Shown here: positions 54,608 to 58,805 of the stretch, one piece after another
Position numbering within the stretch: the stretch's first letter is position 1
Layout of the letters: each line of letters starts with the position of its first letter
Sequence record: PP496440.1
Length of the DNA stretch: 64,000 bases
Reading direction: 5' to 3' (one strand)
The notes under the pieces: model-generated
Database searches by the model: none
What the model was told of the DNA's origin: nothing
The model's input: the letters and a program-made list of their open reading frames with translations, nothing else
Made by a program: the position numbers and the translations under genes

Positions 54608-55282
54608 CTACGCGGCCAGTGCGGCAGCGGCGATATCCCACAAACGCTTCCGGTCGTCCGCGCCGATCTGACCGCCGTTGATGGCCTGGGTCACATCGAA
54701 GAAGCGCCCGGCATCAGCCAGCTTGTTGCAGTTGTTCTCATCCCAGTAGTCGGCAGCTGCCATGAAGCCTGCTTCGGGCAACGCCAGCAGATCCGGGTTG
54801 TTGATGAGTGGGATACCCAGCTTGTTCTGCAACTTGAGGTACTCCGCTTTGCCGGTACGCATGATCGGGCAACGACCTCGGTACTTCCACCCGTCACCAC
54901 TCGCCTCGTCGCCGTTACCCATGCGGTTCGCATAACAGTTGTTGGCGATGGCCTGGGGTTTGCGCGCCAGCTTGATCGCCAGTGCGTTAGGTGCAACGCG
55001 TACTTGCCCTTTGTCGTTGGTGATCTTGACGCGCTTGCCATTAGCGTCTACCAACCCGTAGCGAGTCGGCCAGGTGTTTGCCAATCCGTCGGCGCTGTAG
55101 TTCAAGCCTTCCTCGAACTTGGCAAGGTCACCCGACTCATGGTCGATCTGGCCGAGGAACATCGCCATGCGTTGCTTGTTAAGGCTGATCAGGTACTTGT
55201 CCATGGCAGCTTGCAGTGGCTTAAGATAAGCCATGGGCGCCGACGGGAAGATTTTCTTGAATTGCAATTCAGTAAGCAGCAT
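54608..55282 (-). CDS. Glycoside hydrolase family 19 endolysin
   Basis: AMFLGQIDHESG..EEGLNYS, YANRMGNGDEASGDGWKYRGR, VTQAINGG..G.DDR; GGAG RBS before ATG 55282. Confidence 0.92.
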   Translation of the reverse strand: MLLTELQFKKIFPSAPMAYLKPLQAAMDKYLISLNKQRMAMFLGQIDHESGDLAKFEEGLNYSADGLANTWPTRYGLVDANGKRVKITNDKGQVRVAPNALAIKLARKPQAIANNCYANRMGNGDEASGDGWKYRGRCPIMRTGKAEYLKLQNKLGIPLINNPDLLALPEAGFMAAADYWDENNCNKLADAGRFFDVTQAINGGQIGADDRKRLWDIAAAALAA

Positions 55283-55610
55283 GGGGTACATCTCCATTGT
55301 TCAGGGTAGACAACATTGCCTGCCAGTCTCCGGTGTTGGGCATTCCATCTTCATGGAACCGGAGGGGCACGACGGGGTGAATGGATAAGGCGTGGTCACG
55401 CATCCGCAGCAGGATGGCGTCGATGGCAGTGTCAATAGACTCGCCTCGGTATTCCATCCGTTGCAGTATCTCTTCCCGAAACATGCGGAACTGCTCTGGT
55501 GGGAAGTTGTACTTAAGACAACTGGCGTGGATGTCAGCCTTGTTCCTCTGGTAGTACGTGACCATCGCGGTAACCCTCGGACATCTGGGGGTGTTGCGTG
55601 TTTTGCTCAT
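55269..55610 (-). CDS. Hypothetical protein co-transcribed with endolysin
   Basis: GGGAG RBS; overlaps endolysin start. Confidence 0.65.
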   Translation of the reverse strand: MSKTRNTPRCPRVTAMVTYYQRNKADIHASCLKYNFPPEQFRMFREEILQRMEYRGESIDTAIDAILLRMRDHALSIHPVVPLRFHEDGMPNTGDWQAMLSTLNNGDVPHAAY

Positions 55611-55742: not shown

Positions 55743-56510
55743 ATGGGCTCTATTCTCTATACCCACCGTCAGATCGTCAATACTCCCAACCTCCGTAAGG
55801 AAGCCCGTGAAAGCAAGAGCTTCAAGGAGTACAGCAAGACCGTCGCGAAGAAAGCCAAGCGCTTGCCGATTCCGGTCCTGTATGTAGACGGCACCCCGAC
55901 CACCGAACAATTCAGCCGCCTGCTGAATGACCGCTTGATCTTTCTGGTGTGCTTGTTCCCCCCGACCGCCAGCATCGAGAAGCTGACCGAGCTGTCCAAG
56001 GTGTTCAGCAGCCAGCCGTGGTATCTGAACATCAACAAGATCAAGGTGTACCAGTTGGATGGCTGCATGGTGACCCGCACCAACCAGACCACCAAGGAAA
56101 CCACCGAAGAGTTCGACTTCCGTACTGCACAGATGTACGCCGTGCAAGAGATCGACAAACTGCTCAACACGCAGGAAGGCCAGATTCTGGCGGCTGCTCA
56201 ATGCCGTATCGTACCAGAAGGCCAGCCGGACACGTGGGCACAAGGCGGTGGTGTCACCACGAAGCTGCAAGGCGCACCCGCTGACCAGCAAACCAGCCTG
56301 GGTGTTGGTGGGAAGTCAGCGGCAGAGATTCAGGCGGGGGTGTCCGAAGTTGAAGCTCAGGATGAAACGGAGTATCTGCTTAGCACTCCGGCTAACGCTG
56401 AACGTCTTCGCCGGTCCATCGCTGAATTGAGCCGTAAGCCTATTCGCGGTCTTGACGGCAAGTTCATCAAGATGGACCAATCTTCGTTCAAGAAGGAGGA
56501 CGGGGAATGA
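55743..56510 (+). CDS. Hypothetical protein with C-terminal YefM-like toxin-binding helix
   Basis: DETEYLLSTPANAERLRRSIAEL at 56361-56429. Confidence 0.75.
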   Translation: MGSILYTHRQIVNTPNLRKEARESKSFKEYSKTVAKKAKRLPIPVLYVDGTPTTEQFSRLLNDRLIFLVCLFPPTASIEKLTELSKVFSSQPWYLNINKIKVYQLDGCMVTRTNQTTKETTEEFDFRTAQMYAVQEIDKLLNTQEGQILAAAQCRIVPEGQPDTWAQGGGVTTKLQGAPADQQTSLGVGGKSAAEIQAGVSEVEAQDETEYLLSTPANAERLRRSIAELSRKPIRGLDGKFIKMDQSSFKKEDGE

Positions 56511-56920
56511 GCCTAAGCTACCGTCCCGGTATTACCCAAGCGCTCAATCTGCTGGATTCCTACCCGGCGGATCGTGACCCACTGGAGGTGCTGACCGAGT
56601 ATCGTCAGATGCTGGTCAAGGAACTTGACGACAATCTGCCGACCCTGAAAGAAGTACAGGATTGGATGAGCCGTGTCCTGTATCAGAACCATGGCAATCC
56701 ATCGCGCGAAGAGCTGGAGCGCCGGGCCAAGGAAGAACTGGGAATGGATTTCAGGTTCACCCACGCGGATCGCACAGGCAACGGCAAGCTCATTGCAGCC
56801 TTAACCTGCAAGCGCCGTACGGTAAATATCACACTGGAACCTACCAAGGTACCTCCACGCGGTCAGATGTCCGAGGGCCGGGAACGGCTCCAGATTACCG
56901 CAATCAATGTAGAGGAATGA
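56507..56920 (+). CDS. Hypothetical protein
   Basis: ATGA overlap, GGAGG RBS. Confidence 0.7.
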   Translation: MSLSYRPGITQALNLLDSYPADRDPLEVLTEYRQMLVKELDDNLPTLKEVQDWMSRVLYQNHGNPSREELERRAKEELGMDFRFTHADRTGNGKLIAALTCKRRTVNITLEPTKVPPRGQMSEGRERLQITAINVEE

Positions 56921-57864
56921 CCATGGCCTTAGCAGCCAAGAAAAAGATCCGTCTGAAACGGCGGGATCGGGACAAGGCGGAGCAGCCACCGGTCGAGTCC
57001 ACCAAGGCCTCGGTGCGCAACATCGTTGGCATCTGCAACCACAACCCGTATCAGGTAGGCCAGCTGTTGCCTAGCGAGCCTGCGGTTATGGGAATGGACG
57101 GGAAGATCACGGGTGCACGTCGCGCCCAATACCTGTTTGTGCCCTATGTCGCCACTCTGCTCCAGTTCCGGGACGTGGTGCTGGCGTTCAAAGGGACCGT
57201 GATCGTCTTCGATGATCCGGTCAAGCTGGACCACGTGCTTCAGATTGGTAACGTGCTGGACATCGTGACCAAGAACCATAGCTACCAGTACACCTTCTGC
57301 CCGCTTACTTCGGCCAAGCTGGTAGCCGCAGATGAGCCCCGGCGCCCAATTATGATCGATCAGGAACGGGTCAACGTTCTGCCGAACATGATCAATGCGG
57401 TGCAGGGCAGTATCGCGCAAGTTATTATGGAAGCCACGCAGAGCCTGATCCCGACCGTCAAGTCGGATGTGCTCAAGACCATCTTCTCGTGGATCAGCGA
57501 GTCCGACTTGACCCCGGATCTGCTGTTGCAGGAACTGGAAAGGTTGAACGTGGAGGATCCTGAGGTAATGATGGCGCCGTTGCTGGCGTTCCTTGGCACC
57601 GAGCAGGGTCAGAAGACATGCAAAGCTTTTGCGATGGTTGCGGAGTACAAGGCCAAAGGGAAAAGCGTTCCGTATCCGAAGATTGAAAAGGCGACCGGTG
57701 TTCCGTCATTCGATCTGCAGTTTGCCATTCGCTACATTCGCCGGACAACCTCTGTGCGTCGGCCAGGTATGACGTTGAGTCAGATCCATGCGGCGCGTAA
57801 ACTCAAATCCAACAATGATGTTCTGGGCGGGATCGATGATCCCGAGGACGAAGAAGATGTTTGA
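56917..57864 (+). CDS. Hypothetical protein
   Basis: GAGG RBS, ATGA overlap. Confidence 0.75.
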   Translation: MTMALAAKKKIRLKRRDRDKAEQPPVESTKASVRNIVGICNHNPYQVGQLLPSEPAVMGMDGKITGARRAQYLFVPYVATLLQFRDVVLAFKGTVIVFDDPVKLDHVLQIGNVLDIVTKNHSYQYTFCPLTSAKLVAADEPRRPIMIDQERVNVLPNMINAVQGSIAQVIMEATQSLIPTVKSDVLKTIFSWISESDLTPDLLLQELERLNVEDPEVMMAPLLAFLGTEQGQKTCKAFAMVAEYKAKGKSVPYPKIEKATGVPSFDLQFAIRYIRRTTSVRRPGMTLSQIHAARKLKSNNDVLGGIDDPEDEEDV

Positions 57865-58771
57865 GACAATTATGCGAGGGGGCTTAGCATCCTTCATCTA
57901 CATCGCGATTATCATCGTGGTTATCGTCTGGGTGGTCAATTCGATATACCGACAGAAAAAGATTGCCCAGATCCGGCAGCACGAACGGCAAGTCAAGCAG
58001 ACAGAGCAGGACCGCAAGGACGTAATCTCCGACGCTGAAGACGCCCGTCCCATCGAATACGTGACAGAGGACACGGGGATGTCGGTTCCCAACTTCTTCC
58101 TGTCCAAGTTCATCGAAGAGCTGGCGCTGGTCACCAGTGCGTCGGTGCGCAGGCTCAGCCCGGTGGCCGGTGCAGAAAGTCTGGAGGACTTGCGAGTTGA
58201 GTTCTCCCGGCTGCAAGCGTTGCTCCACCTTCAGTTCGAGCAAGTCGTTGGTCCCGTTCTTGAAGAAGAGATGCGGTCCACGTACGAACGGGTTGAAGCA
58301 GCGTTGGCCGACGCCAAGGCGAAAGGCATGGTGCGAGGCGAACGTGAATTCGGTAGCCTGCCGCATACGCAACCGCCGCGTGAGTATCGCACCTACACCA
58401 ATGAACGCCTGGGTATTCGTGTGCACAGCACCATGTCGGACATCGAGGTTGCGGAAGCAGTAAAGTGGGCGGAAGGATTGGTCATCTCGCTTGCTTCGGA
58501 AGCTGACAGGGTGGATAAGTTCCGTGAACTCTTGCAGCAGGGTCAGGTCAACGAAGTAAAGGTTGAACTGATCAATTCCCCGGAACCGCAGATCTATCGT
58601 CATCGGTTCGAAGGCTTGAACGTAACCACTACGCTGCCCCGTGAAGAGGTGGCCGCTGTGGTAAAACCCTATCTGGGGATGGCGGTCACCGAGTCGGTAC
58701 TGGAAGAGATTAAGTTCATCCTCCAGCAGAAGACCAGTGACGCAGTAATCGTCGATACAGACGCTACGTAA
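57857..58771 (+). CDS. N-terminally membrane-anchored protein
   Basis: TM helix, coiled coil, short C-terminal duplication. Confidence 0.75.
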   Translation: MFETIMRGGLASFIYIAIIIVVIVWVVNSIYRQKKIAQIRQHERQVKQTEQDRKDVISDAEDARPIEYVTEDTGMSVPNFFLSKFIEELALVTSASVRRLSPVAGAESLEDLRVEFSRLQALLHLQFEQVVGPVLEEEMRSTYERVEAALADAKAKGMVRGEREFGSLPHTQPPREYRTYTNERLGIRVHSTMSDIEVAEAVKWAEGLVISLASEADRVDKFRELLQQGQVNEVKVELINSPEPQIYRHRFEGLNVTTTLPREEVAAVVKPYLGMAVTESVLEEIKFILQQKTSDAVIVDTDAT

Positions 58772-58776
58772 TACTC

Positions 58777-58805
58777 AGGGTGTTCCTTTCTGGAACACCC
58801 TTTTT
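58777..58805 (+). terminator. Intrinsic terminator
   Basis: AGGGTGTTCC/GGAACACCCT followed by TTTT. Confidence 0.85.

Follow-up and report, generated by a model that had tools for sequence, protein, structure and literature searches.

Can a virulent phage carry the toxin-binding peptide of a bacterial antitoxin without the rest of that antitoxin, and, if so, what would the peptide do there? The question is raised by KoPa5_00070, a gene in the 64,000-nucleotide stretch of DNA analysed here (hereafter, the window), which corresponds to bases 1-64000 of Pseudomonas phage vB_PpuM-KoPa-5 (PP496440.1). KoPa-5, a myovirus with a genome of 201 kb, was isolated on Pseudomonas putida PaW85/KT2440 and is one of the nine G3 jumbo phages in the CEPEST collection (PMC7616413), the genomes of which are near-identical; these phages are reported to be lytic, and no integrase or recombinase was detected in them (PMC7616413). 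A preliminary description of the sequence had noted that a 23-residue peptide of KoPa5_00070 (amino acids (aa) 207-229, positions 56361-56429) resembles the C-terminal segment of the Escherichia coli antitoxin YefM, which binds and inhibits the ribosome-dependent RNase YoeB. Judging from the sequence, KoPa5_00070 appears to be a chimera that consists of a phage-specific N-terminal domain (N-domain), a flexible linker, and a 28-residue module descended from a Phd/YefM antitoxin.

The 14 identities among 23 positions that had originally been counted against YefM are reproduced in the alignment of the peptide with the E. coli YefM chain 2a6q_A (residues 40-75), obtained by a phmmer search of the PDB sequences. 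The top six matches in this search are all YefM-type antitoxins (2a6q, 6l8e, 6l8g, 6l8f, and two 7bwf chains) and, after one unrelated chain, two RelJ chains (3cto/3oei) follow, bringing the Phd/YefM-type matches to eight of nine. The hidden Markov model search with PhdYeFM_antitox, which had been suggested as a check, also finds the segment: PF02604 aligns its positions 42-73 (of 74) with aa 200-231 at E 5.4e-4, with a score of 20.1 bits that is below the gathering threshold of 29.8 bits because just one third of the domain is present. Taken by themselves, the sub-threshold Pfam score and the weak E-values of the single-sequence PDB matches (0.09-1.5) would be compatible with chance resemblance or convergence of an amphipathic helix, without any descent from YefM.

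Larger searches speak against such an explanation. Comparison of the last 61 aa with 1.84 billion representative proteins yielded seven matches at E ≤ 0.001, namely, KoPa5_00070 itself, four confirmed Phd/YefM antitoxins (the best antitoxin match at E 1.6e-5), a mini-protein with the motif alone (P0006), and an unrelated S-layer protein. A word-index search retrieved an 84-aa antitoxin (P0014) that has 18 consecutive residues in common with the phage segment, and in the closest true antitoxin, P0008, 20 of the 23 residues are identical to those of the phage peptide. When a profile of 80 bacterial tails was run against the six-frame, stop-to-stop translation of the entire phage genome, aa 204-231 were matched with E 8.7e-17, and the KoPa5_00070 open reading frame (ORF) was the sole significant match in the 201 kb. 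The 25 matches listed, out of 93, in a search of plasmids are Phd/YefM-type antitoxins without exception. The consecutive identities and the profile E-value exclude chance and convergence, the probability of which we consider negligible; by the standards of sequence comparison, aa 204-231 is a true homologue of the toxin-binding element that is formed by the end of α3 and by α4 in Phd/YefM antitoxins.

The residues through which YefM holds its toxin are retained in this segment. In Staphylococcus aureus YefM, α3 (41-57) together with α4 and β4 (57-83) forms a U-shaped clamp over the catalytic face of YoeB (PMC7544224); the hydrophobic contacts with YoeB involve T51, Y53, L54, L64, I68, and L71, and E50 forms a salt bridge with a conserved YoeB arginine (PMC7544224). 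In an ungapped alignment of 6l8e_A 41-74 with phage aa 199-232, these residues map to E208, T209, Y211, L212, L222, I226, and L229, that is, all seven key contacts, the six hydrophobic ones and the salt-bridge Glu, are identical in the phage, which bears out the initial identification of the segment as the toxin-binding element of YefM. The seven residues are unchanged in the copy of the sister phage Peetri, despite five differences at other helix positions. An AlphaFold2 (AF2) model of KoPa5_00070 places helices at aa 208-212 and 216-230, the positions of the α3 end and α4 of YefM. The placement of the peptide at the end of the protein, as first described, needs to be qualified: the module does lie in the C-terminal part but ends 24-26 residues before the C-terminus, and the β4 strand is not covered. 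Two strands of 2 residues each appear at aa 234-242 in the low-confidence model; we infer no more than that the C-terminal extension might substitute for β4.

The rest of the protein is not that of an antitoxin of this family. The Phd N-terminal dimerisation and DNA-binding domain (β1-α1-α2-β2-β3) was not found: PF02604 aligns through its positions 42-73 alone, so that Pfam matches only the tail; the N-domain has no Pfam or PHROG match; and its alignment with seven YefM proteins by hhalign has a probability of 0.05%, that is, the N-domain is not Phd-like. The lack of a Phd/YefM domain that had been read from the sequence is thus upheld. A profile search of 5.8 billion proteins with the N-domain detected the sister phages and Vibrio phage GR11A, and nothing else; the sole outside relative, the 186-aa protein GR11A_00197, is 33% identical over aa 45-108 and has no tail. 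Homologues of KoPa5_00070 were found only in the nine sister phages, apart from this N-domain match.

The description of the segment preceding the peptide as a flexible linker also stands, given that this region varies between the sister phages and is predicted to be unstructured. In the model, aa 152-207 have a predicted local distance difference test score (pLDDT) below 50 and almost no predicted secondary structure apart from one 5-residue helix, so the linker probably is disordered; the linker allele diverges between phage groups. In Peetri, a 48-nt tandem duplication of a linker unit is located just upstream of the module (L004:3035-3340 compared with window positions 56280-56530). The possibility that the linker is a decayed second copy of the motif was considered and rejected: hhalign gave a hint at E 0.15, but 20% of shuffled sequences score equally.

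What the module does in bacteria can be gauged from the genes that carry it. Pattern scans of species-representative genomes yielded more than 226 relatives, of which 80 loci were kept; the selecting pattern covered aa 209-218, so that conservation in that stretch is partly circular, with the α4 positions lying outside the pattern. A YoeB-like gene is located directly downstream (ending 100-500 nt away, on the same strand) in 74 of the 80 motif genes, four of these YoeB-like genes being short; one of the six loci without it is cut by the contig end. The YoeB partners typically are plain proteins of ~85-90 aa, and the gene of P0008 overlaps a YoeB gene (PF06769). In 19 of 85 motif genes, the N-domain preceding the motif is non-Phd, by profile, and these 19 genes are still paired with YoeB. 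Among these are P0010 and P0011, from a Hymenobacteraceae metagenome-assembled genome and from metagenomes, which are 74-aa proteins without a PF02604 match in which a different N-domain and a short linker precede the module; the aligned stretch of P0010 has 85% identity with the phage tail, and its gene is directly followed by an 84-aa YoeB gene (PF06769). Genes of this type indicate that, in bacteria too, the module is passed from scaffold to scaffold, with the YoeB partner kept. Small plasmid-like or prophage-like 'viral' contigs, unlike the phage grafts, carry ordinary, complete yefM-yoeB pairs.

Several variants of the bacterial arrangement were encountered along the way. Three bacterial Phd/YefM antitoxins (P0004, P0005, and P0009; loci L014-L016) contain the motif twice in tandem, and for two of these, P0004 and P0005, there is no adjoining YoeB gene. 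P0006 is a 63-aa protein with little beyond the motif and is 70% identical to the phage tail; in each of four short contigs from metagenomes, its gene (L009-L012, ~120-340) lies beside one for HU-HIG, and the 1.7-2.8 kb available contain no YoeB. Short or partial YoeB genes adjoin motif antitoxins at five of the loci examined (L013:803-1003, L043, L049, L076, and L086), which may be decaying toxin-antitoxin (TA) pairs.

Does the phage module, too, have a toxin partner? Run against all six reading frames of the complete 201-kb genome, the YoeB profile detected no YoeB-like sequence (best E 1.5). KoPa5_00070 leads a rightward block of four tightly packed genes, 00070-00073 (Table 1); a consensus scan found no sigma-70-like promoter upstream of position 55743. 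The 4-nt start/stop overlap between 00070 and 00071 resembles the layout of yefM-yoeB genes, and the single-sequence model of the 00071 product, which is of moderate confidence (pLDDT 72.5), shows helices followed by a four-stranded sheet, so one could imagine a phage-borne TA-like pair in which the YefM-like tail restrains 00071 as a new toxin. We regard such a pair as very improbable. The 00071 protein has no Pfam match at E ≤ 1 and no match to the YoeB profile, and its model matched no PDB fold at E ≤ 0.001, nor RelE, ParE, or YoeB; on these family, profile, and fold negatives, 00071 was rejected as a toxin. Furthermore, 00071 is intact in all nine phages, including the five that lack the helix, and in the phage Pori-4, a 00070 without the tail is accompanied by a 00071 with 96% identity to that of KoPa-5. 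Hence 00071 is independent of the tail, and the Pori-4 combination largely refutes the pair. The absence of a toxin nearby, as first noted, can accordingly be extended to YoeB-like sequences in the whole genome.

Table 1. Features of the KoPa5_00070 locus and two other phage genes with the motif; coordinates refer to the window, except for those with an L prefix, which refer to separately extracted loci.
Feature	Coordinates	Strand	Description and basis
KoPa5_00070	55743..56510	+	255 aa, annotated hypothetical; ORF list and GenBank annotation
N-terminal domain, aa 1-165	55743..56237	+	Not Phd/YefM; Pfam, PHROG, and hhalign negatives
Linker, aa 166-203	56238..56351	+	Gly/Ala/Gln-rich, varies between sister phages; model and sister-phage alignment
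YefM-like toxin-binding module, aa 204-231	56352..56435	+	End of α3 and α4, includes peptide 56361-56429; profile, Pfam, and PDB matches
C-terminal extension, aa 232-255	56436..56507	+	No match to the β4 part of the bacterial module profile; sister-phage alignment
KoPa5_00071	56507..56920	+	137 aa, 4-nt overlap with 00070, no recognisable toxin; Pfam, model, and fold search
Terminator-like hairpin	58777..58801	+	End of block 00070-00073; 10-bp stem followed by a T-run; consensus scan
EM_124, phage EM	L106:1707-2300		Pakpunavirus; annotated 'YoeB-like TA antitoxin'
SPA05_00148, phage SPA05	L108:1701-2342		Pakpunavirus; member of the ~200-aa family

In two genes of this neighbourhood, 00069 (window 55269-55610, minus strand) and 00073 (57788-58771, plus strand), the longest ORF begins upstream of the annotated start, and among the sister phages, 00069 is annotated in the longer version in some and in the shorter version in others. 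In the longest reading of 00073, Pfam matches aa ~33-74 weakly, below the threshold, with short viral membrane proteins; translation is annotated to begin 23 codons further downstream (57857), so that the matched stretch comes to lie near the N-terminus of the protein. Outside the window, PP496440.1 contains queuosine-type (7-deazaguanine) pathway genes and a gene annotated 'CRISPR/Cas system associated protein' (KoPa5_00109, 00188, 00190, 00231, and 00235), which may be relevant to DNA modification or other counter-defence.

The same motif occurs in other phages, on other proteins. A tblastn search of 50,697 phage records, with the 36-aa module as the query, matched 126, of which 121 are Pseudomonas phages, including the four tail-bearing G3 phages. 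At least 117 of the matched records are P. aeruginosa phages of ~90-95 kb, and six of these that were inspected are all Pakpunavirus. The P. aeruginosa phage proteins form a family of ~200 aa (PHROG 7101) in which the motif is located in the middle of the protein and the annotation varies between 'YoeB-like TA antitoxin', 'prevent-host-death protein', and hypothetical; no Phd domain was detected in this family by Pfam, and there are no YoeB or toxin neighbours. PHROG 7101 matches KoPa5_00070 with E 0.0099 over profile positions 106-138 of 220, that is, the motif alone. A further scaffold is a 317-aa protein of an uncultured, jumbo-size phage, encoded in a 231.8-kb contig (IMGVR_UViG_3300028608_000006; L024:3152-4105) and again in a 56-kb contig (L023:3152-4105). 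In this protein, a C-terminal motif with 18 of 23 identical residues is preceded by an acidic linker and keeps a canonical β4-like end, and the body matches PHROG 28183. By BLAST, the three phage scaffolds have only the motif in common, and the rest of the 8-kb locus around the 317-aa protein gene has no match in KoPa-5.

The proposal that phages repeatedly captured only the neutralising peptide of antitoxins is thereby strengthened in one part, with two additional, unrelated phage scaffolds, and loses the other: the supposed TacA-like fragment in the window is unsupported, with no match to Pfam DUF1778 at E ≤ 0.01 among the 68 hypothetical proteins of the window. The Pfam scan of these 68 proteins produced nine family matches (DUF3309, Phage_gp49_66, PTPS, DUF2303, SLT, Nuc_deoxyrib_tr, and others) and no further antitoxin family. 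The YefM peptide probably is a portable anti-toxin device in phages. It is conceivable, although we would stop somewhat short of expecting it, that virulent phages captured the YoeB-clamping peptide at least three times, on unrelated scaffolds, such that the peptide would act as a tethered, portable, and, possibly, broad-spectrum inhibitor of YoeB-family RNases.

Within the group of KoPa-5 itself, the protein exists in three forms. In KoPa-5, Voja-6, Amme-1, and Peetri, it is full-length, with both the helix and the C-terminal extension; in Aura and Illi-2, most of the extension is kept and exactly the helix is missing; in Lauda, Pori-4, and SKa-4, neither is present. Relatives lacking the tail, which were to be sought according to the preliminary description, therefore exist, the module being present in four of the nine phages and absent in five, and the three length forms mark it as a self-contained unit that can be dispensed with. 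What separates the short form from the intermediate one is an indel of 57 nt with a 5-nt repeat, AGAAG, on its flanks. Divergence of the full-tail allele extends across the linker and into 00071 as well, which points to a mosaic block, and a model in which the three length forms arose by simple deletion was not retained because this divergence leaves gain versus loss of the tail undecided. The mosaic block encompasses window positions 56240-56900 and the matching stretches of L002-L008, from the linker of 00070 to the C-terminal half of 00071. The 00071 protein itself comes in two allelic types that are ~63% identical over its whole length, and Pori-4 is a recombinant of both haplotypes.

In a mosaic hot spot of this kind, where indels occur together with a duplicated linker unit and two allelic blocks that reach into 00071, the module could be a neutral recombination relic, that is, part of a yefM gene from a bacterium or plasmid that became joined in frame with the 3' end of 00070 and is tolerated there without a function. 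The absence of the module in five of the nine sisters, the missing β4 part, and the unchanged plating of the phages in the presence or absence of the host yefM-yoeB would all be compatible with a relic. We nevertheless consider it unlikely, given that all seven key contacts are kept, in the otherwise diverged Peetri copy as well, and that a minimal segment with the same boundaries is found on two unrelated phage scaffolds and is maintained in more than 100 P. aeruginosa phage genomes. In addition, the GC content shows no sign of recent arrival (0.526 in the module vs 0.553 in the window).

On balance, we lean towards the view that the module is a grafted YoeB-neutralising peptide that the virulent phage would use as a counter-defence or orphan antitoxin; from the homology, we infer that it may bind YoeB, neutralise it, and thereby contribute to counter-defence. 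Under the mechanism we envisage, the tail, disordered on its own, would fold onto the concave face of the β-sheet of a host ribosome-dependent mRNase of the YoeB family and cover the active site in a YefM-like manner. In this way, translation would be preserved in the event that the labile antitoxin of the host is depleted by the infection or that a defence effector of the YoeB type is triggered by it. The N-domain could be a mere stable carrier or could have a second activity. The host P. putida PaW85/KT2440 possesses a yefM-yoeB locus (PP_2940-2939), the antitoxin of which could not be deleted (PMC7280312), suggesting that the host YoeB toxin is active; this locus is a plausible target. KoPa5_00070 shares two features with orphan antitoxins: it is encoded by a virulent phage without a matching toxin, and the homology is confined to the neutralising part. 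The presence of the module in four of nine near-identical phages fits an accessory counter-defence trait.

A number of observations weigh against this interpretation. The only phenotype data with a bearing on the question are negative for this host: deletion of the 13 TA loci of the host, yefM-yoeB included, left plating unchanged for 67 of 67 CEPEST phages (PMC7616413), a result that holds for the P. putida host and the test conditions of that study. The 67 CEPEST phages were isolated on the TA-less host (PMC7616413), and they must include the tail-less G3 phages, so that the tail is not required against the host YoeB in the laboratory. Five of the nine sister phages do without the module, which shows that it is dispensable. 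Positions 29-39 of the module profile, the β4 part, are unmatched, and the phage protein continues instead with 24 unrelated residues. The AF2 model of the whole KoPa5_00070, built from a three-row alignment, is poor, with a mean pLDDT of 41.9. Finally, an origin of the peptide from a host antitoxin, as assumed in the preliminary description, finds no support in the closest bacterial relatives, which are alphaproteobacterial and Bacteroidota antitoxins rather than those of Pseudomonas.

The lack of an effect of the classical host yefM-yoeB on the CEPEST phages could also mean that the module binds a partner other than classical YoeB, for example, a multidomain defence effector, or that it rewires or recruits rather than neutralises. 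YoeB-like domains are present in candidate multidomain defence proteins (bioRxiv 10.1101/2025.01.28.635273), and possible partners include PtuZ of the proposed ptuXYZ locus, with its YoeB/BECR-like domain, and the host YefM-YoeB-operator complex; the tail could rewire regulation or bring the activity of the N-domain to a target. The module is tethered to a conserved 165-aa domain in KoPa5_00070 and has domains both before and after it in the P. aeruginosa phage family, which suggests more than a bare plug. Moreover, cryptic prophages restrict G3 phages more than 1000-fold through effectors that are unknown (PMC7616413). These points notwithstanding, a different partner appears improbable to us: no candidate partner was identified in this analysis, 74 of the 80 bacterial motif genes are paired with a plain YoeB of ~85-90 aa, and the residues that are kept match exactly the canonical YoeB contacts.

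Comparison with known systems helps to place the putative YoeB-neutralising graft. With YefM of E. coli (2a6q) and S. aureus (6l8e), KoPa5_00070 shares the sequence of the α3 end and α4, including the 14 of 23 identities with the former and the seven contacts of the latter, as well as a C-terminal region that is predicted to be unstructured save for two short helices. Unlike YefM, it is a 255-aa protein of a virulent phage without a Phd domain, a recognisable β4, an adjacent yoeB, or signs of autoregulation. The chimeric antitoxins P0010 and P0011 resemble it in that the same module, beginning at the same N-terminal boundary, is joined by a short linker to an unrelated N-domain; they are, however, small, true antitoxins with a YoeB gene that overlaps their stop codon, whereas the phage protein has no toxin partner. 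EM_124, SPA05_00148, and the 317-aa protein are similar to KoPa5_00070 in that they combine a YefM-like motif with the lack of a Phd domain and of a YoeB neighbour in large phages of the virulent type; outside the motif, these scaffolds differ from it, with the motif being internal in the P. aeruginosa family and terminal, with a β4-like end, in the 232-kb contig.

Orphan antitoxins and antitoxin mimics are an established strategy of phages (PMC11825919; PMC13728456; for Dmd, PMC7354431). As in T4 Dmd, which acts against RnlA/LsoA, AdfN, and Gp145 of ICP1, which acts against DarT, the neutralising half alone is present in a virulent phage; AdfN is a DarG1-like enzyme, a relative of DarG that lost a domain (PMC11825919, PMC13728456). 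These proteins counter type IV or other toxins or are not homologues of host antitoxins, unlike the KoPa-5 protein, which carries a putative 28-residue type II graft known from its sequence. The KoPa-5 graft would therefore represent a new form of the known orphan-antitoxin strategy. In the literature, we found no paper that describes the function of KoPa5_00070 or its P. aeruginosa phage homologue and no report of such a type II peptide graft.

It has long been asked whether classical type II TA modules defend bacteria against phages, and in the hands of the laboratory in which these phages were isolated, the 13 host loci had no effect. If the proposed function is correct, a phage-borne toxin-binding peptide would provide direct evidence, at the sequence level, of selection that toxins of the YoeB type impose on virulent phages. 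It would also add a minimal type II variant to the known anti-TA strategies (Dmd, pseudo-ToxI, TifA, AdfA/AdfN, and Gp145) and define a 'peptide graft' class of type II anti-defence, with a simple sequence signature by which such grafts could be found. Such grafts could partly explain why chromosomal type II TA loci often appear to be useless against the phages that can be isolated. More generally, the disordered tails of antitoxins can move between protein scaffolds, in bacteria and in phages alike.

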